Positions 12,489 to 44,200 are shown, counted from the stretch's first letter. The stretch is 64,000 nt of DNA from Phaeosaccion multiseriatum (GCA_965112735.1 OZ218963.1:2232001-2296000), one strand, 5' to 3'. Numbers and translations: made by a program. Notes: generated from the sequence alone by a model not told the origin.

Positions 12489-12736
12489 TTGTCGAGATCG
12501 GAGTCAAGAAAAGGTACGTAAGTCAATGATAAAACGAGCGTTACGTAACCTTACGAGGGGGGGGTCTGAGCTTTGATTTCCCTTTGAAGAGCCCCCTAGA
12601 GCCTAACGAGCAGCCCTCCATTGATGGACATCACGCCCCTCGTGTATACACATATATTTTTCAAGAGGGTGGTGCATGGTCTCGCGTGAAGTAACGGAGC
12701 AAGCTGAAGGGAACCCCAAGGGGTTTGAGGATTGAA

Positions 12737-14245: not shown

Positions 14246-17200
14246 TTACATCGCTGGGGCACTGCGCTGCAGCAGCTCGAACCACTGCCTCAGGGCATCG
14301 GAAAGCACCTCCGGCATGGCCTCAAAGCGCTGCAGCACAATGTAGTAAGGGAAAGGGTACTTCTCCAGATAAGGCACAAACTTGATGCCAGATCCTGAAC
14401 CGCCCTTGCTCGAGGCGCCTCCCCCCTTTCCTCTCTCCATCACCATGGTCTGCGTTATCGACGACCGTCCATCCCCCTCACCATCTACCACCACCATGAC
14501 CAGCAGCTGGCCCCTCTCTTGCATGCGACGCATCACTTGCTCAATGAACTTTGGGTGGTTCCGGTCGTAAAAGCCGTCTGAGATCATGAACACCAATTGC
14601 ATGGGCACGTGACTGGTGCCTGACGACGACGCCCGAGAGGCTCCCCCTCCACTCCTCGCGCGATCCATCATGTCCGCCATCCTCTCCAAAGCTGCCCTCA
14701 GGTCCGTTCTGGTCTGTGCAAAGGTGAAACTGCCAGCTACCCTCGCGCCCACCTCGTCGGAGAAGGGCTGCCCGCTACCCCCACCACAGGTACCCTCACC
14801 CTCGAAGCCATGCAGTATCTCAGCGTCATCTCCAAACTTCACGACGGCAATCTCGCCCACCTCCAGCTGAGTCAGGCCAGACGCCACTGTGCTGAGGGCC
14901 GCCAACGCAAGCACTCCTGCTCCGTTGGCCTTCATGGACTCGGAGTCATCAATCGCGAGCACCACTTGGTAGGCTCGCTTGGCTGGCTTGGTGCGTCGGA
15001 GCCAAATCTTGTCCTTACGAAACCCGGAGGCAATGTACGAAATGACCCGGCGCATGTTGATGCGCTTCCCTGCACGGTAATCGCCCTGCAGTTTGGTGGC
15101 CACCATTGGCTCCAACACGAGACGCAGCTGCTCACAGAGGCGGTTAGAGAGAGGGGCCGTGGCAGCTCGGAGCTTGTTCCATAGCTCCCGCCCGGCCTCC
15201 ATACTATGCAGGCCATCGCCTTGGCTTGCTGCCGCCTCTTGATGAAGTGCCAGTTGCCGTAGTTCCTCCCGGATGCGGGCATCCAGTTGGTCCTCCTGCG
15301 TCGTCGACTGTTGCTGAGTCTGCTTGTTGCGCATCCACTCCAAAGGGTTGGCGAACACCGCCCCGCTGCCCTCGATGCGCTTCTCCTCGCCCTCTTCACC
15401 CCCCATCACAGCTGCGCGGATATCATCGGCCTCGGTTTCGAGGGGATCGTCATCATCCTCCGCCTCCTTATTCTCATCTCCGTCTACAGTACCCTCCTTC
15501 TCCGGTCTCTCCTCCTCCTCCTCCTCCTCCTCCTTTGCCTCGTGCGAGGCATGGGTGCTTTTCTTTGACCCAGACTTCTTCGCCTTGTCTCTTTCAGCCT
15601 CCTCCTCCGCCTTTCCCTCTTCCTCCATCGCCGTCGACGCCTCCTCTGGACTGCCAGCCTCGACACCATCCAACGAGTCGGCCAGAGCATCATCCACACG
15701 CGCTTCCTCTGGCTGCTGATGCTCGTCGTATTCTACATTATCCTCTCCCTCTTCGTCTGGTTTAGGGGTGGGAAGAGTCGGCGCTTTTTGGTCGTCCGGC
15801 GCTGCACCGAGCACTTGTCCGGTCCCCTCGTCGCCACCCTCGGTGTACTCGAACTTGGCGTTCTCGTCCATCTCGCGCGCTTCGGGCTGATCCGACGACG
15901 GGGCGGCAGGAGGCTCTGTGCGCAAACCCGACGGAGGAGAGGAGGGGAGAGGAGAGCAAAGGTGCACATTACAGGGGGTCGTTCTGGACGCGACGCACTG
16001 CACGACTTGCATCACACACACACTCTTTCTTCCTCTATGTCATTGCTCGAACAAAGAAGAGCTTCCAAAAACGACTCAGCCTATCCCCCTTCGTGGGAGG
16101 GACTTGGACCTGAATTGAGTTCAAAGCGGAGTCCACTACAGACCCGCTCGCTGAGATTCCCACTTGTAAGGTGTAGTCATCATTGTCAAAGAAGCGCCCT
16201 CTGCTGTCATCCCCGCCAAGAAAGTAAAACGAGGTAGAACGATACCCCCCCTCACCCCTTGACCAGACCTATTCTATCCTTTCGGCTGACATCAGCCACA
16301 CAACCACGATTGGACACACACACACACACCTGCCTCGCCCTGCTGCTCCTCCTCCTCCTGTAACATGTCCAGACGCTTATGCCAGTGCTGCAGAGCGTCG
16401 CCGGGGTTCCGGAACGGGTTGGGCGCTTCCTTGCGGCGTCGCTTGGCATCAGCAGCCTTGGCACTCTCCTCCTGCTCCTCTCGATTGGCGTCGTCTCCTC
16501 CACCCTCTTCGTCGCCTTCATCCTGCTTGTCGGGCCGCCACTCTCCTTCACCTCCATCATCCTCCCGCCCGTCGTTGGTGTCGTCCTTGCCCTCCTGCCC
16601 ACCCTCATCATCATCCTCCCCTCCCTCTTGCTCCTCCTCCTCATCCTCCTTCCCTTCGCCCCCCTCCTGAGCCTCCGCCTCCTTCTCCGCCTCCACCTCT
16701 TCGAGCACCGCACTGCTGCCTCCCTTCGCAGCGACACCATGCGTCGGCTCCTCCGGGGCCCCCGTATCTTGCTGAGGCTCATCAGGGTCCTCCTCCTCCT
16801 CCTCCTCCTCCTCCTCCTCCTCCTCCTCGCCCCCCTCTTTGCCCTTCTCCTCCGTATTCACAACCTCAGGGTTGCCCGCAATCCCCGCCGCTTGCATGTC
16901 CTGTTCCTCCTCCATCTTGGTGTCCTCATCCTTCTCATCCCCCCCTTCTTTCTCTTCCTCATCAGCTGGAGTGGTCGTGTCTGGCCCCTCTTCTTCTCCG
17001 TCCGAGCCTCCTGCTGAGGCTTCCTCCATGCCCCCGCCTTCCTCCTCCTCCACCTCCTCCTCCTCCTTCCCGTCATCGGCTCCGTCCAGGTTAAGGCTAT
17101 CAGGAACGTCATCTTCTCCCTCTCCATCAGCCCCTCCCTCTTCGTCAACATCCATTGCCTCCTCCTCCTGCCGCACGTCGATACCCGCTGGCTTTTCCTC

Positions 17201-20200
17201 GTAATCGTCCTGCAAGTCTTCATTAATCGGTCCACGGTCCTCCTCTCCATTGTCACCTTCGCGCTCTTCTTCATCCTCGCCCCCATCTCCCTCCTCCTGC
17301 TCTTTCTCCCCCTCGTTCCCTGGCTTCTTCTTCTCGCCTTCTTCCTCCTCCCCCTTCTTCTTGTCATCATCCTCTCCTTCCGCATCCTCTCCGTCCTCTT
17401 TCGTCCGCATCTCGTCCTCGATAGCTTCGCCCTCCATCTTTGAATCTTTCTCAAACTTCTCCTTCTTCTCCTCGCGCCCCTCATCCTCTCCTTCGTCTTC
17501 ATCCTCACTATCCCACATCTTCTCATCTACAACATTGGCATCGTCTCCCGCATCGCCCATTTCTCTCTCGAGCTCTTCTTCGGCATCCTCCCCCTCGTCT
17601 TCTTCGTTTTCTTCCTCCTTCTCCTCGTCGGGCAAATCGAACAGCTCCCCATCGAAATCTTGCTGCATCTCCATGCCTTCATCCTTCTCCTCTTCTCCCA
17701 GCTCCTTCTTCGTCTCTTCCTCATTCCCACCCTTGTCAGCACCTTCTTCCCTCTCCTCCTGTAGACCCAACAGCTGCTCCTCGTCCTCAATCTGGTCACT
17801 AACATCTTTCTTGCCCTCCCCTTCTCCCATGCCCGTTCCCTCGACATCGTCCGTGAACTGCATCCCCTCCGCATCCCCGTCCCCGTCCGCCTCCGACTCC
17901 ACCGTTTCGTCTGAACAAAGCCCCTTGGCCAAGAGCGTCCGAAACACGCGAACGCACACGTAGTGCAGCTTGCTCGTGCTCTGCCGTGACACATACACAC
18001 ACATACACACACGCACACACACAAGAAGACGCAAGAAAGAAAGTAGGTTTAAATGAGAGTGGGCGAGACAAGCAGCAGAGCTTGGACAGTTACAAAAGAA
18101 GCAAGAAGGGGGGGGGGCGGTCCTCATACGAAAGATGGTGATCTGTTTTCAAATCCACATATATGCGTTAAGAGTGGTGCATGAACTTTATAATCCTCGG
18201 AGCCGCCCGTCTATTGAATGCAGAGCTTTTGATTCAAGAGAGCCCAGAAAGGGGACAAAACAAAAACACCAAAGTAGCACACACACACACACACACACAC
18301 ACAAAGTTTCGATCTGACGGACCGTGTGACTGACCGTAACTCACTCACCTTTTGGCATGCCACAACGCCTTTCAAGAAAGTCCCTGCGGCCGCCTCCAGT
18401 TGGCGGGCCAGCCACAGCAAGTCCGCCACAAGACCACCGAATGTCTCTCCGGCCAGCACCAGCAGGGGGTGCCCCGCGTATCCCCGAGAGGCAGCGATGG
18501 CAGAGAAGTCCCGCAAGGCTGAGGACACTGCGACCAGCGCCGCGCCAGACCGCGACAGACGCAGCTGCTTGGCCTGCTTGAACATGCGCTGGTGCCTGTC
18601 TAACAGCGTCCCAGCCGAAGCTCCTCCCTCTTCCTCTTCCTCCTTTCCGCTTTGTTGGTGCCGCTTCCCATACTCGGTCGACGCCAGCGCTTGCACGCTG
18701 AGCAGCATTGCTTCCACAGCTGCCTGCAGGGTTCGCTGCATGCGCTCTGCCGTGTGTGTCACCACCACCTCGTCCTCCTCCTCCACCTTCCTCTCTCCCT
18801 GTCCCGCTCCCAACTCCTTCTCCTGCTCCTCCTCCTCCTCCTGCTGCTGCTCCACCCCCACCCCAGACACGGTCACCAGGGCACCCGTACCTTTGCCCAT
18901 CAACGACAACGTCTGCGGGAGTGCCACGGCCAGCCACGCTTGCATTGCTCCTGTCTCCATTTCGCTCGCTCCCCTCCGCGCCACCCCACGCAACAGCGTC
19001 TGTATCCTCTCCAGTGCTGCACTCACTGCCTGCGGAAAGTCGTGTCTTTCCACTGCTGAAGAGAGTTCTGCTTCGGCCGTGGATATCGCGTCTTGTGCTG
19101 TGAGCGCTACACAAGCAGCCTTGCCTCCTAGCAAGGGTTGAAGTGGTCTGGTCATGGCCATGCCGCCTTCGTGAGTCATGGCGACTGCAGCAGCGCTGCT
19201 AGTAGCACTACTGCCACCACCACCACCACCACCACCACCACCATCCAGCTGCCCCCGTAAAGCCCCAGCTGTGGCGCCCAGGCACTTCTCCACTCTCGTG
19301 ACGATGGGCAGGACAGCCCCGAGCTCCTGAATGGCCCGTCTATGCCTTGGCGCAGCCTCGTCGAGAGCGTTGCAGCCCGTTTGGAGCACTGCCCTCATCA
19401 TCAAGGAGAGCTCTCGGAGCGCTTCCAAAGCGAGACACGCCCCTTGCTGTTGGGCTCGGAGAATGGCCGCAAGGGGGGCCTGGGGAGGCAGGAGGAGTGG
19501 ATGGTGCGCGTTGAGCTCAACGACCAGTCGGGCTGCACCCTTCTCCTCCTTCTCCTGCTTTGCCTGCTCCTGCTGTGGGCGGCCACTGGAGAAAGCTCCC
19601 GCTGCCGCAGCTCCTGCTGTCCCCGCTGCTACCTCTTGTGCAGCGGCAGCGGGGGCAGCGCCGCAGCTCTCCAATGTTCTTAGCGCTGCTACAGTCGCCA
19701 CAAGTCCGTTTACTTCCTCCGTCACCTCACACACCATTGCCCTCTGCTGCAGCACCAACATCTGCAGGTGCTCACTCAGACCAAGCATGAGGCCGGACTC
19801 CCTTCGCGAAACGTCTCTCGTGGATGCGAAGGCCCCCTCTTCCAACCTCAGTCGCTGCTGCTCCGCCAGTCCTTTGAAGAAGTATCTCTCCGCGGAGCCC
19901 CACATGTCAGCGGACGAGCGAGGCGTTAGACTCAGAGGCATGCCGCCCTTGGCATAGCGCAGCGACAAGTGCAAGCCGGGCGAGGACAGTGACATGACTC
20001 GCCGCAAGTCCCTTGCTTCTTGTGGAGCGGCCGCCGAGCGTGCCGAGAGTCCTTGTCTCTGCAAGCCCCTAATGAGGTCAAGCACGGCGCGCTTCTTCAC
20101 AGCCCTTGTAGCCACGTGAGCCTTCTTGGTCGTCGTTCCGTTCTCCCCCTCTTGTCCTCCCACCCCTGCCGCTTGTGCATCACCAACGCCCCCGCCACTA

Positions 20201-38200: not shown

Positions 38201-41200
38201 CACAACACGCCCACTTGCCCTCCGGTTTGATAGGGGCCCTTCCGTTCCTCCACATGACATACTATCCATGCCCTGCAGCCCTAGCACTGCTTTCACCCTC
38301 ACCCTTCTCCCTTGACCCTCACTCTCACTATCACTCTCACCCTCACCCTCACTCCCACCCTCACCCTCACCCTCACTTTCACCCTCACTCTTGCTCACCA
38401 TGGCCAGAATGTTCTCCCATTCCGCACTGGGAATATCGCCCACGTGCACCTCCAGAAAGCGATTCCGAAACGCTCGAGACAATGGTTTCCTTCCCCCGTA
38501 GGCGCCCGGCGGATTCTGGGTCGCAAAGAGCTTGAAATTGGGATGCGGCGTCACTACCGTTTGCGTCTCCGGTATGAAGAGCTCTCGATTGTCGTCCAAA
38601 AGTCGATTGAGAGCCTCGAGCACCTCGGAAGGGGCGAGATTGAGCTCATCGAGAATGATCCAGTAACCGTTACGCAGCGCCTCCACGAGAATGCCCTCCT
38701 GGAAACACAACTTGCCGTGCTCGTCCGCGCTGTAGCATCCCGTGTACTCCTGAATGTCCGTGTGCTCGTGATTGTTGATGCGCACGCAGCGGTGGCCGCA
38801 TCGGGCGGCCAGATACTCAACGAGTGTCGTCTTGCCGGAGCTGAGGGGGAGGGTTGAGTTCGGGTACGAGTGGTGTGAGGGGAAGCACAGCACAGAAGAG
38901 GCGAGGGTGGGGAGGGAGGGCAGTGGATGAGATTAAACATTCGCTCGCTTGAAACTTGCTGCCTGCTTCTGCGTCCGCTGTTGTATTACTTTTGTACCAC
39001 CCCCCCCCCCCTCCCCTCCCCGATCAGAGCGATGATTTGAGGATGAACAGAAGGTCAACGATTGATCAGATATTGGTTCATTGATTGATCAGATCGTGGG
39101 GCATGTTTTGTCGTCAAAAAGCGGATGCATGACCCTGCCCATCCGCAATGCTTTTCAGCACCGCAGCACGGGAGGCACAGAACCATAACGAACAGGTCTA
39201 TGATAAGTCATGGGCTCTTATCCTCATCTCAATCCAATCCAGTTTCCAATCCGACGGGGCCCGTCCCGTGTCAACAAAACACACTCAATTTGAATAATAA
39301 AGAGGGAGGAAGAGAGAATACCAAGGGCAATACTCTGAAACAAGTAAACACAAAGCACGGGACAGCACAAAAATCTCAGCCAATAAAGAAGCCGACCTAC
39401 ACACTCACACACACTCTCCCCCCCCCCTACCTGGTTGGGCCCTGGAGCAGGATGGGGCCGTCGCTAACCTTGCAGGCGCGGGCCACCGTGCGCAAACTGT
39501 CCTCCACCGCAGCGGTAAGGATGAAGCGCGTGAGTCCAGTCTCGGAGTCCCTCTTGGCCCAATCTTGCTTCTCCAACGCCCCGCACGGGAGCCAAAAGGG
39601 TCCTATGACTTCCCACTGTTCGGCAGAGCTGCCACGCCCCCCCGGGCGGCGAGGAGGGCGCTCCCAGTCTCGTTTGGACACGTCTTTGCCAAAGGCACTG
39701 GGATGGTGGGAGATGGCAGTCCATGGGAGATGGGGGGTGGGGAGGGGAGGGGAGGGGAGGGGTAATGTGAGATGCTTGGGGCTGGGGGATGGTGTGAGTG
39801 CAATGATCGGCGTTTCAAACACATGCCAAACAGTACCCCCACTCCCTTCACACCTCATGATCTTCTTGTGTAGCTTCGGTCTACTGGCTCCGTCCAGCTG
39901 CGTCTCAAACGAAGCCGCAAAGCCCTCCACCAGGGCTCGAGCGAGGCTGAAACCGCCATCCTCCGCCAGCACACGCGCGGCGTTCAGCGCTCGACAGAGC
40001 GTTCGGAGGGAGTAGCGAGGACACTGCCCTGCGCCATCTGTGAGCCCCTCCGCGGCGTTCTTGCGGCAGTGGAGGTAGAGGTCGACGATAAGGGTGCGGT
40101 GCGCTTCCGTTACGCCGACCATGTCACTCAAGTACAGCTGCACGACCACACGGAGGTCGGCAAGGTCCGTGAGCTCCGGTACGAAGAGCTCTGTGAACCT
40201 GCTCCTCAGGGCCGGAGGGAGGTCCTTCTTGGCCGCGTCGGTAGGAGGGTTCATGGCGGCGAAGATGCGAAAGTTGGGGTGGCGTCGCACCGTGCTCGTG
40301 TCGCCCTTCTCCATGAGGCACACGGAGCCCTCGCTGCCCTGGGCATTTCACATTCATTGACATATGAACAGGAGGGACATTTGGGGGGGGTGTTCCGTGT
40401 GTGCGTGCGTGCGTGTCGTCCAGTACCCACCCGGCCGGAGCCGGAGATAAGGTTGACGGTGCGCAGAAGAGAGGAGCAAACAAAGCAAAAGGCGAGGCAA
40501 ACACACACAACAAAAACCGTATAGATGTGTTGTCAAAAGAGTCAAGAGAGGGTGGTGAATGAAGAAATAGAGAGCGAGTGCGAGTGTGCGTGCGCGTACG
40601 ATGTGTCAAATGAGGGGAAAGGGATCAGTCCATCTAGTAATTGAAGGGTCCACAAGATTCCTTCAAAAAGGCCGCGGCGACTAAACCGCTCTCGGAGTAG
40701 CTGATTCGTTGGTCATCATCTCCCTTCCATCTCTCTCATGTCTCCCCTCCACTCGACCCGAGCGAGCGAACGGGTTGAGCGAGCGCCAAAATACATGCAC
40801 TCACTCGTGCACACTGAAACGCAAAACACGACAACACAACTCGTCCGAACTCTCTGAGCGCATGTATGCCGAATGAATGGAACCACAGCAGCACCACCAT
40901 CTCAAAGCACACACCACCCAACCCCACCCTGCCCCACCACACTTCCTCTCCTATTTTACAACTGTCTCCAATGTACCTCACCTCAAGCAGACCAGAGAGG
41001 CGCTGCAAAGTCTCTGCCGCGGCGAGGTTAATCTCGTCAAGGAGTACCCAGTGGCCCTCACGAAGAGCCTTGACCACAAGCCCTTCCACAAAGGAGAAGG
41101 CAAAGGCGCCATCCACGGCGACTCTGTATGTAACCGTCACATGACGAAAAGGGCCGCAGCCCACAGCGAGACAGGGGAGGGAGGAGAAGAAACAGCAGAG

Positions 41201-44200
41201 TGTGACGTCAGCTTCCTCTATTTCGGTGAACGCTCAGGTGGCTTCGCAGATCAGAGAAGTCTGCCCTTCTTGTTTGGTCCAGTGCAGAACGGCACGTCTT
41301 AACTTCCACCGCCCGGCGCCCTTTCCCTCCCCTCCCCTCCCCCACCCGGCCTCACTCCGTGTCCGAGTGGAGCGGTTGCTTCTTAACTTGTCCAACTTTC
41401 GCTTCGCATGCAAGCGTGTTTTTTTATCCTCCTACATAAAACAAATCAGTTCTCAAACTTTCAAAAAAAAAAAAAAAATGCTAATCATCAGGAGAGTACA
41501 GACATTTAACAGTACATGCGTCCGGTCAACCAATCAACCAACCAGCCCACGCCGTTCCATCCCCTACATATACATACACAAAGATATACATATATATACC
41601 GCCCTGAGCCCATCCTCCATCCTCGCGTGTTGCTTACACCGAGTGACTCTTCTCTTCTTTCCACTCCCACACCCCGAACCGCACGTACCTCTGTCTCTCA
41701 AAGCGCGCCACAGCATTGCTGAAATCGGTCCATAGCCGCCTCAGCTCAGGCACGTCCAACTCAACTCTGCCAGCAGCAGCCGCACCATTACTTCCGGCAG
41801 CCACCTTCTTCCTCCCAATTTCCCCCCCTCCCCCACCCCCCCCCCCCATATTCTCGTCGCGCCGCTGCCGCTGCTGGTCCCCCTGCTCTTCACCACCCTG
41901 CTGATGCTGCTCCGCCTCTTTGCGGTTGAGCTTGGCCATCGCCATGCTAACCGCGTTGTTGAGCCCCACCGACAACCTCTTCCATTGCCTTCTCTCGAAG
42001 CAGAGGGTGATGGAGGCCTGGAACTTGGCGTTGGCTTGCTCAGAGAAGAGCGTGGGGAAGGTGGAGAAGAAGCGGTCCAACACGTCCTGAACCAAACAAG
42101 GGCAAGTATAAGGGTACACACAAGTGAAGCAAGGGCACGCATGCACACACACACGCACACACACACACAAACACACGCATAAGCACAAGGGGGAGAGGCC
42201 GGGTCAGGACTAGACAAATGGCGCACAAGGAGGGGAGGATGGCAGTGAATGGGTGGCGCAGTTTGAGCACGCGTGGGGAGCCTCTGTGTGTAGCCCGTCA
42301 GGTAGTTATGAAAAGAATCGACACGTGTTTAGTTCGGATCAGATCTTGGTAATTTCAGTTTCATCGTCACGGGGCTGGGCTCGGCTGCGCGCACACAGAG
42401 CTTTGGCTTTGGTGCATTCGTCATGAGGGGCAGAGGGGGGGGGAGTAAGAAGTATAATGGGAGGGCAGGGGAGCGCCTTCTTCCTTGCCTTTATGTTTCT
42501 CCGCCCCACTCCCCTGCCCCTCCCTCTGTTGAAGCAAAGATTTTTCAATCTACACATCAAAAAAAAACCCGTCGTACCTGAGCCAGCTGCCGCATCTCCA
42601 CCGGTCGATAGCCGCCCAACAGATCCGCGCTGTCCGTCTGCAGACTCAGATTCTGGACAACCAACTTCTGCCCGAGGCTGCGCGCCAACTGTTGCACAAG
42701 GGTGGTCTTCCCACACCCCGTTTCACCCACCAGCAGCAGCGGCTCTCGCAAGGCTACACCTGCTGCGATTCGCTCCATTAAGCGCAGTGCCTGCCCTGTG
42801 TGAGCGAAGGAGGAGGAAGAGGAGGAGCCCGAACCCACTGCATCGGCCGCTCCTCCTCCCCCCCCCGCTCCGAGGGCCCTTGACCTGGGTAAGTTGACTC
42901 GGCCGATAGTCACGTACGCCTCCTTGACGGTGAAGGAGGGACGACGAGAGAGCACCACGTCCATCAATGTCTCGGGCCGCACCTGCATATGATGGGCACC
43001 AATCGCAAGAGAGAAACATGACCAGTAGAGGAGGAGAGAGGGGAAGAGAAGGGAAGAGAAGCAAGAGCAAAAGACCAAGAGCGGCAGCGAACAATAGACG
43101 GGTAGGGGAGGGGGGGGGGGGGGTGAGGACGCGCGTTCGATACCCTTTTCGAAGGGGAGACATTCTCCTCCAAAATGTTCTATCTTCTCCTGTACTCTAC
43201 GTGGGTGATTGATTGATCAGATCGTGGGGCATGTTTTGTCGTCAAAAAGCGGATGCATGACCCTGCCCATCCGCAATGCTTTTCAGCACCGCAGCACGGG
43301 AGGCGCAGAACCATTATGAACAGGTCTATGATAAGTCATGGGTTTTTATCCTCAGCTCGATCAAAATCCGACAGCGAATGAGAGGGGAGACGTTTTCCCC
43401 ATCCACCCACCCATCCACCGATACTATAACCCAATCGCCCCACGAAACGCCAAAGACCATTCGTACACGACACACCCCCATGAATAATCACCATCCACGT
43501 ACCTGCCAGATGGATGCAAACGCCTCGGCAACGGCGGCGAGCTGATCCGTGGAGGGTAACGCGCCGGCGAAGACATCAAGCGCCTCCACGAGCACCCGCA
43601 GTGTGTCGCTCTCTGCGCAAACCAGCCCTCCCTCGCCCGCAGCCTCTGACAGCGTCATACCCCTCACGCGCAAGCCGGAGGGCGGCAATGAAGGGACGGC
43701 GGCGCCGCTCACGTCGTCGTTGGCTGTAGTAGCGGCAACCCCTCCCGCCCCCCTGGAATTGCCTGGGTCCTCGGTGTCGATATCGATGTCAGCGAAGTGC
43801 CCGAGCTCGTCAACGCGACGGCACAGCTTGAGGAAATCACGGACATTCGGCGCTCTCCCTCCTCCTCCTGGGGTTGCTACTGCTACTGATGCTACTGCTA
43901 CTGCTGGTGGCGGTGCTGGTGCCAATGTCGACCCCCCCCCCGTTGCTGGAGGACCTGCATTTGCGACATCGCCGCCGCCCCTCTTGCTACTGCTGCTGCC
44001 GCCCCTGCTGCTGCTGCTCCCACTAAAGAGCTCGAACGTGCGCAGCATTCTCGCCACAACCCGAGGAGGGAGGGCCGGAAACTGTTCACAAGCCACCACC
44101 CAGAGCTCTTCCGGCTGTAAGCTGCTGATACACACGTGCGTCCACAGGGCGCCAAAGTCCGTACTCCCTCCCAACATGACGGCGTGACCGTGATCGCCAT

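Follow-up and report, generated by a model that had tools for sequence, protein, structure and literature searches.

Helix 34 (h34) of 18S ribosomal RNA (rRNA) lies at the decoding centre and bears conserved 2'-O-methyl groups as well as one of the two conserved acetylcytidines of 18S rRNA. Its 3' strand holds the G in AACAGG for which the small nucleolar RNAs (snoRNAs) SNORD25 and Arabidopsis snoR19, of the box C/D class, are guides; the yeast counterpart at this site we take to be snR56, with 2'-O-methylated G1428 (Gm1428). On the 5' strand, snR55/SNORD33 is the guide for 2'-O-methylated U1269 (Um1269). Yeast C/D snoRNAs, including snR55 and snR56, also have conserved extra pairing elements that do not direct methylation and often lie in the second guide region; opening of local structure has been proposed as their role, and the targets of accessory elements and guides may overlap (van Nues et al. 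2011, PMC3116282). Guides of the snR4 type base-pair with a single strand to either side of C1280 (PMC12848939, PMC5464676), and the guide sequences of snR4 and SNORD13 flank the target C on one strand (PMC12848939, PMC5464676, PMC9670809). No human homologue of snR4 has been identified (PMC9670809). Here we describe two copies of an atypical box C/D-type RNA in introns of the midasin gene of Phaeosaccion multiseriatum (GCA_965112735.1 OZ218963.1:2232001-2296000; this whole stretch of 64,000 nucleotides (nt) is referred to as the window). An earlier note on this DNA had interpreted them as a duplicated atypical C/D-type RNA that is antisense to both strands of h34 and may be a chaperone or an acetylation guide; duplication, atypical character and antisense matches to both strands were all found, but the acetylation guide was not supported, and the contact that stands out from chance is a complementarity of 15 base pairs (bp) to the h34 3' strand.

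The distance from C box to D box is 139 nt in each copy (39227-39089 in copy 1 and 43355-43217 in copy 2, minus strand; other coordinates are given in Table 1). Stretches of ~165 nt containing the copies are 96% alike, and the surrounding intron sequence is not alignable. Pattern and nhmmer searches gave a copy number of two within the 64-kb window. According to tblastn with midasin fragments, the midasin gene is located on the minus strand, from ~45.9 kb downwards; copy 1 sits between exon blocks 40341-39424 and 38995-38405, and copy 2 between a block ending at ~44028 and a block starting at 42952. Because both copies are placed between exon blocks of a minus-strand gene, they are intronic and in sense orientation, in agreement with the location in midasin introns proposed earlier. 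Exactly six differences separate the copies, all of which occur in the 51 nt directly after the 5' stem, and the 3' 100 nt, including the D box and the 3' stem strand, are identical. The differences (copy 1/copy 2) are A/C at nucleotide 1 of the C box, two changes in UAAGAGC/UAAAAAC, two in CGUU/CAUA and one in CUGU/CUGC. Neither AUCAUAGACCUGUU nor CAUGCCCCACGAU, the two antisense elements singled out in the earlier note, is touched by any of them, just as that note had stated for its two 139-nt copies. Positions within the RNA follow a 150-nt numbering, in which position n corresponds to window nucleotide 39234-n in copy 1 and 43362-n in copy 2. In copy 1, AUCUGAUCAAUC occurs a second time at 39060-39071 (minus strand), at a distance of 23 nt downstream from the D box. 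Here the D box and 3' stem strand are repeated exactly, which is not the case in copy 2, and the repeat may represent an alternative 3' end or a trace of duplication. Homopolymer runs of C and G (at least 12 nt) were also observed at 39000-39025 and 43110-43123, in the same introns, ~60-90 nt downstream of each copy.

Both copies have a CUGA box near the 3' end. The sequence after it, UCAAUCAAU, pairs with the 5' flank in a predicted terminal stem of 7-9 bp that brings CUGA next to the C box. Each copy had been credited with a terminal stem of its own; stems are indeed present in both, but they are largely shared, the 3' strand being identical and the 5' strand slightly different. Compared to RUGAUGA, the C boxes retain the UGA core and have G for U at position 5 in both copies, as well as C at position 1 in copy 2. 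A further feature, not mentioned in the earlier note, is a C'-like box, UGACGA. Considering that a D box, a C-like box and a terminal stem occur in both copies, and that the host gene also carries at least one canonical C/D snoRNA, the two copies are very probably genuine, if atypical, box C/D snoRNA genes.

Complementarity to rRNA was analysed using 120 eukaryotic rRNA gene (rDNA) stretches that contaminate prokaryote assemblies, and the consensus 18S derived from them may not be identical to the 18S of the host. All 18S positions refer to one of these contaminants (L026), whose numbering coincides with that of S. cerevisiae and agrees with the literature positions of Um1269 (snR55), Gm1271 (snR40) and the acetylcytidine (ac4C) at 1280 in the CCG motif. 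C1279-C1280-G1281 is located 2-4 nt 3' of GCAUG in L026, which is where the ac4C site had been placed earlier. Full-length RNAduplex runs against rDNA gave meaningless long-loop duplexes and were replaced by ungapped scans and scans in 18-nt windows, both with shuffle controls. As an observation on the collection itself, more than 120 bacterial and archaeal assemblies and metagenome-assembled genomes of the species-representative collection carry eukaryotic 18S/28S rDNA contigs (L005-L124), many of them yeast-like, indicating contamination.

The strongest evidence concerns element B (UAUCAUAGACCUGUU, positions 29-43), which is identical in both copies and pairs with consensus 18S 1424-1438 in 15 bp including two G-U pairs. 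The duplex of 14 bp with one G-U described earlier is real, but it forms part of this longer one. The pairing was seen in 71 rDNA loci with the run scan and in 112 loci with the guide rule. A short motif, GCCUC, adds 5 bp with 18S 1416-1420 across a loop of 13-14 nt, and the composite duplex reaches -30.0 kcal/mol in copy 1 and -27.6 kcal/mol in copy 2. Runs of at least 15 bp anywhere in ~6 kb of rDNA were obtained with 4 of 150 dinucleotide shuffles, and, in 18-nt windows, 0.5% of 200 shuffles paired with the h34 3' strand as favourably as element B, which gives an overall p of about 0.005-0.03. Element B on the h34 3' strand is the one statistically supported contact of the RNA, and judging from this complementarity the RNA is probably aimed at least at that strand.

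Element B covers the same 18S segment as SNORD25 and snoR19, and its register is that of a D' guide: four more paired nt come after the C facing G1428, the first G of AGG, and complete element B; the next four positions read CGUU (copy 1) or CAUA (copy 2). A SNORD25/snR56-type guide would have the antisense to AACAGGUCUGUGAU followed by a D' box 4 nt past the C that faces the target G. As the earlier note had also recognized, no D' box follows element B; the GA dinucleotide is missing from this place in both copies, and two of the six paralogue differences fall exactly here. Further differences from SNORD25 are that element B starts 16 nt after the C box, that the boxes are 139 nt apart and that Rfam gave no SNORD25 or snR56 match. 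Element B looks like an inheritance from a D' methylation guide which, because no D' box follows it, would be able to pair and unable to methylate.

The distribution of paralogue differences is informative in this respect. No change falls in the 23-nt block around element B, and all 6 are confined to the other 28 nt of the variable region; we estimate that six differences in 51 nt versus none in the next 100 nt would occur with p of about 0.004 under a uniform spread. Since GA is missing at the D' place in both, loss of the D' box probably preceded the duplication, with element B retained thereafter; this argues for work by pairing alone. Such an arrangement resembles the accessory elements of yeast snoRNAs (van Nues et al. 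2011, PMC3116282) in being a conserved antisense element without an active box of its own, located in the second guide region and directed at the surroundings of a methylation site. Its position and its conservation between paralogues fit this class, although the conservation is that of two sequences only; in contrast to the yeast elements, however, the target is the partner strand ~150 nt away and not the immediate flank, and the main guide is imperfect.

This main guide, the D-adjacent sequence CAUGCCCCACGAU, falls on the h34 5' strand. It places an A opposite U1269 at D+5 (the fifth nt upstream of CUGA), with a G-U pair at 1265 and a duplex energy of -15.9 kcal/mol. The two mismatches noticed earlier in this SNORD33/snR55-register guide were seen against consensus 18S as G facing G1267 (position 3 from D) and C facing U1272 (position 8), leaving four contiguous pairs around the target. 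The guide is similar to snR55/SNORD33 in having U1269 at D+5 and differs from it in these mismatches and in the lack of an Rfam match. The canonical guide rule, applied to the 120 rDNA loci, revealed no other conserved rRNA target for the D-adjacent guide. The h34 5' strand is G-rich, and the best energy observed on it was reached by 8.5% of shuffles, i.e., it is not beyond chance; likewise, four separate 5'-strand windows at -14 kcal/mol or lower are typical of shuffled sequences. Two features alone speak for this putative guide: a canonical location beside the D box and a register that exactly fits a conserved methylation site.

Two additional contacts with the h34 5' strand were considered and rejected as evidence. 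Element C (GGUCAUGCAUCCGCU) forms 14 bp with one bulge at -23 kcal/mol, but 8.5% of shuffles equal it. Element A forms, in copy 1 only, a duplex with 1270-1287 that bulges out exactly C1279/C1280 (-14.7 kcal/mol); copy 2 has two differences in this element, and the bulge duplex is lost or weakened there through a paralogue difference, and the same geometry at that energy was found in 14% of shuffles. Both elements were dropped because shuffled sequences pair as well with the G-rich strand. A match of UGUUCGUUAU to 18S AUAACGAACG is missing from copy 2 and was hence taken as chance.

Whether the mismatches of the D-adjacent guide are real depends on the native 18S. One of the 120 rDNA loci (L082) reads AUUGUGGUGCAUG, with A1265 and U1267, and positions 1265 and 1267 therefore vary in nature. 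In this eukaryotic 18S (L082:2340-2577), the 5' strand of h34 has GGAUUGUGGUGCAUGG for GGGUGGUGGUGCAUGG and the 3' strand has CCCUCAGA for CCCUUAGA, representing a rare natural h34 variant. Position 1272 was fixed in the pattern used to search for reference sequences, so the reference set is uninformative about variation there. Two other minus-strand antisense stretches in the window (18173-18184 and 12668-12679) fit consensus G1267 and U1272, suggesting that the native 18S is the same as the consensus at these positions and that the mismatches are real. These indirect lines do not all point the same way; we consider it very likely that the mismatches at 1267 and 1272 exist in the host.

These observations bear on a close rival of the reading that we favour, in which the D guide methylates the U1269 equivalent in the same way as snR55/SNORD33, and element B opens h34 by removing the partner strand. 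This would require either a native 18S that differs at 1267 and 1272 or tolerated mismatches. It would account for the fact that D+5 falls exactly on a site that snR55 methylates in yeast, for the presence of a canonical D box and, 18 nt upstream of it, a C'-like box, and for the identity of the 3' 100 nt, guide included, between the copies; natural variation at 1265/1267 (L082) and the extra base-pairing described for snR55, snR56 and snR40 are also in line with it. However, two mismatches to consensus leave four contiguous pairs around the target, the energy on the G-rich strand is no better than that of shuffles, and the other antisense stretches of the window fit the consensus at 1267 and 1272. 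We regard such an assisted methylation guide as possible, though somewhat unlikely.

Instead, we favour a snoRNA that functions by pairing. Two paralogous intron-encoded box C/D-type genes of ~150 nt each, on the midasin sense strand, would give rise to an RNA that is freed from the spliced intron and shielded by the C/D kink-turn and the terminal stem; we infer that this RNA is expressed and assembled into a small nucleolar ribonucleoprotein (snoRNP) of the box C/D kind, in which Snu13, Nop56, Nop58 and fibrillarin bind a stable RNA. It would form the 15-bp duplex, extended by 5 bp, with the h34 3' strand at the SNORD25 site, and its D-adjacent guide would be in the Um1269 (snR55) register of the partner strand, with two mismatches inside the 10-bp zone that methylation needs. 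Because of these mismatches, and because element B has no D' box, the particle most likely works via pairing alone, presumably with no methylation at either site. While the 3' major domain is being assembled, the h34 3' strand may in this manner be kept off its partner, and other factors or guides may thereby be helped to reach the h34 5' strand. The proposal that a pairing-only role consists in keeping the h34 strands apart is a tentative one. The suggestion of the earlier note that the RNA holds h34 open is a reasonable inference for the 3'-strand element, but not for the rest of the RNA.

Several observations weigh against this pairing-only reading. A working methylation guide would be expected to place a conserved methylation site exactly at D+5, as the D-adjacent guide does. 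Its mismatches were measured on the consensus and not on the host 18S and perhaps are not real; an L082-type sequence with A1265/U1267 would abolish the mismatch at 1267. The argument from constraint is based on two sequences, and gene conversion could account for the identical 3' part; recent RNA-mediated copying would weaken the argument in the same way. No orthologue was found in the contigs L001-L003 or in one metagenome pattern scan, and hence covariation could not be used. Finally, the C box deviates from RUGAUGA in both copies, and the sequencing runs that match the stretch are four DNA runs of one sample, with no RNA run among them.

The last of these points would also fit decaying or silent copies, i.e., a former dual guide (SNORD25-like plus SNORD33-like) that lost its D' box, gained mismatches in its guide and became non-functional or unexpressed; the deviant C box, the missing D' box, the mismatched D guide and matching runs consisting of DNA only are all compatible with such a history. 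On the other hand, the differences are markedly concentrated and spare both element B and the 3' 100 nt, whereas the flanking sequence is not alignable; the D box and terminal stem were retained in both copies. We consider decay quite improbable.

Another hypothesis is that the RNA is a guide for a different target, such as a lineage-specific rRNA segment or another RNA that would pair perfectly with the guide beside the D box, an internal CUGA or CUUA; the 5'-strand matches would then be chance, and element B a SNORD25-type relic. The 5'-strand contacts are indeed not beyond chance, the guide sequences were strictly kept between the copies despite the mismatches to h34, and the internal CUGA (39155-39158), an element absent from the earlier note, is canonical. 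This CUGA, however, is in the tip of a predicted 15-bp hairpin, the strongest one predicted. A competing 7-bp hairpin (GCGGAUG/CAUCCGC) would free it, and the region is identical in both copies, so covariation does not favour either form. As a D' box the internal CUGA was rejected, since the guide upstream of it has no consistent rRNA target and the box is within the hairpin loop. No consistent canonical target was found in the 120 eukaryotic rDNA loci, and the D+5 register on U1269 would have to be coincidental, with a probability that we estimate as about 0.01-0.07. We consider a different target improbable.

With regard to acetylation, the RNA is similar to snR4 and SNORD13/snR45 in that it is an atypical C/D RNA and pairs imperfectly in the region of the h34 CCG motif, and its D guide overlaps the snR55/snR40 sites, as does GS2 of snR4. 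As an snR4-like guide, it would offer C1280 of CCG to Kre33/NAT10, on which acetylation by such guides depends, in yeast together with Sni445, via either the bulge duplex of copy 1 or the separated h34 strands. In the former, positions 14-28 pair with 1270-1287 and only C1279/C1280 are unpaired (-14.7 kcal/mol). Mismatched antisense elements are normal for such guides, full complementarity having reduced SNORD13 activity, and no h34 guide is known outside yeast. However, the bulge duplex is gone in copy 2 and is reached by 14% of shuffles, and 3' of C1280 the same strand is not paired by any conserved element. In addition, the layout is unlike that of snR4 and SNORD13, whose two separated guide sequences flank the C. 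Searches with Rfam models at gathering score gave no match, for the whole window, a 6.5-kb region or each locus alone; at E up to 10, with each 196-nt locus alone, the best match was snoR53 (16.6 bits versus a gathering score of 70), and snR4, snR45, SNORD13, SNORD25 and snR56 were absent from the matches. The similarity to snR4 and SNORD13 models that the earlier note had proposed to look for was therefore not seen at this threshold, and its acetylation-guide reading is left without specific support, given the lack of an Rfam match and of conserved pairing 3' of C1280. We find this reading very doubtful. Similarly, it is very unlikely that a snoRNP invades h34 from both sides with a continuous 30 nt (positions 14-43) on 1270-1287 and 1424-1438, the CCG cytidines being bulged, whether as an acetylation guide or as a dedicated folding chaperone, in a lineage from which no snR4 relative is known.

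Table 1. Features of the two snoRNA-like copies in window coordinates.
Feature	Copy 1	Copy 2	Strand	Remarks
snoRNA-like gene copy 1, including terminal stem	39075-39240		-	nhmmer E 1.6e-62
snoRNA-like gene copy 2, including terminal stem		43203-43370	-	
C box (AUGAGGA in copy 1, CUGAGGA in copy 2)	39221-39227	43349-43355	-	read directly
Element A, between C box and CUUA (39204-39207)	39206-39220		-	positions 14-28; 18S 1270-1287
Element B, UAUCAUAGACCUGUU	39191-39205	43319-43333	-	antisense to 18S 1424-1438, h34 3' strand
Expected D' place after element B (copy 1 CGUU, copy 2 CAUA)	39187-39190	43315-43318	-	
GCCUC, extends element B	39172-39176	43300-43304	-	positions 58-62
Predicted 15-bp internal hairpin, GAAA loop	39138-39172	43266-43300	-	minimum-energy fold
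Element C, GGUCAUGCAUCCGCU	39120-39134	43248-43262	-	positions 100-114; 18S 1267-1280
C'-like box, UGACGA	39111-39116	43239-43244	-	read directly; 18 nt upstream of D box
D-adjacent guide, CAUGCCCCACGAU	39093-39105	43221-43233	-	18S 1265-1277
D box, CUGA	39089-39092	43217-43220	-	read directly

Protein relatives of the midasin exon beside copy 2 had 39-45% identity, the best named one being from the brown alga Discosporangium (39%); they came from a length-filtered search, outside the scope of which full-length midasins fell. The contigs of these relatives (L001-L003) contain no related RNA. With a cyclophilin-like ORF as a second protein query, matches came from mixed eukaryotes and covered 14% of the query. 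The only match of the metagenome pattern scan (L004) was rejected as chance, since it lacks a C box and shows no homology in the sequence between the motifs.

Additional RNA candidates were observed in the midasin gene. A canonical box C/D snoRNA occurs in another midasin intron (40619-40726, minus strand), with GAUGAUGA, CUGA and a GGGA/UCCC terminal stem; because it carries the canonical GAUGAUGA, this genome also uses the standard C box. A second candidate (18115-18208, minus strand) fills a short midasin intron, the flanking open reading frames (ORFs) ending at 18211 and starting at 18127. Within this candidate is UCAUGCACCACU (18173-18184), a 12-bp antisense to consensus 18S 1267-1278; the CUUA after this stretch is in the Gm1271 register (snR40/SNORD32 site). 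The boxes of the candidate are odd: CUGA is absent, CGAGGAU occurs close to the 5' end and AUGAGGA close to the 3' end. Another stretch, CCAUGCACCACC at 12668-12679 (minus strand), matches 18S 1267-1278 as a perfect 12-nt antisense and has CUCUUGA after it; its surroundings show no clear C/D boxes, and chance alone would give ~0.2 matches of this kind in the window. The region 16000-20000 has a GC skew of -0.31 over two long minus-strand ORFs without a Pfam match, which may correspond to the D/E-rich, acidic portion of midasin. In that case, the gene would span from ~45.9 kb to below 16 kb and would host at least five intronic snoRNA-like elements.

With two paralogues and a consensus 18S as its basis, the case presented here is a good candidate and not a discovery. 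If it is true, a long antisense to the h34 3' strand that lacks a D' box would represent a natural pairing-only use of a former methylation guide, and would offer a handle on how strong rRNA helices stay open for modification.

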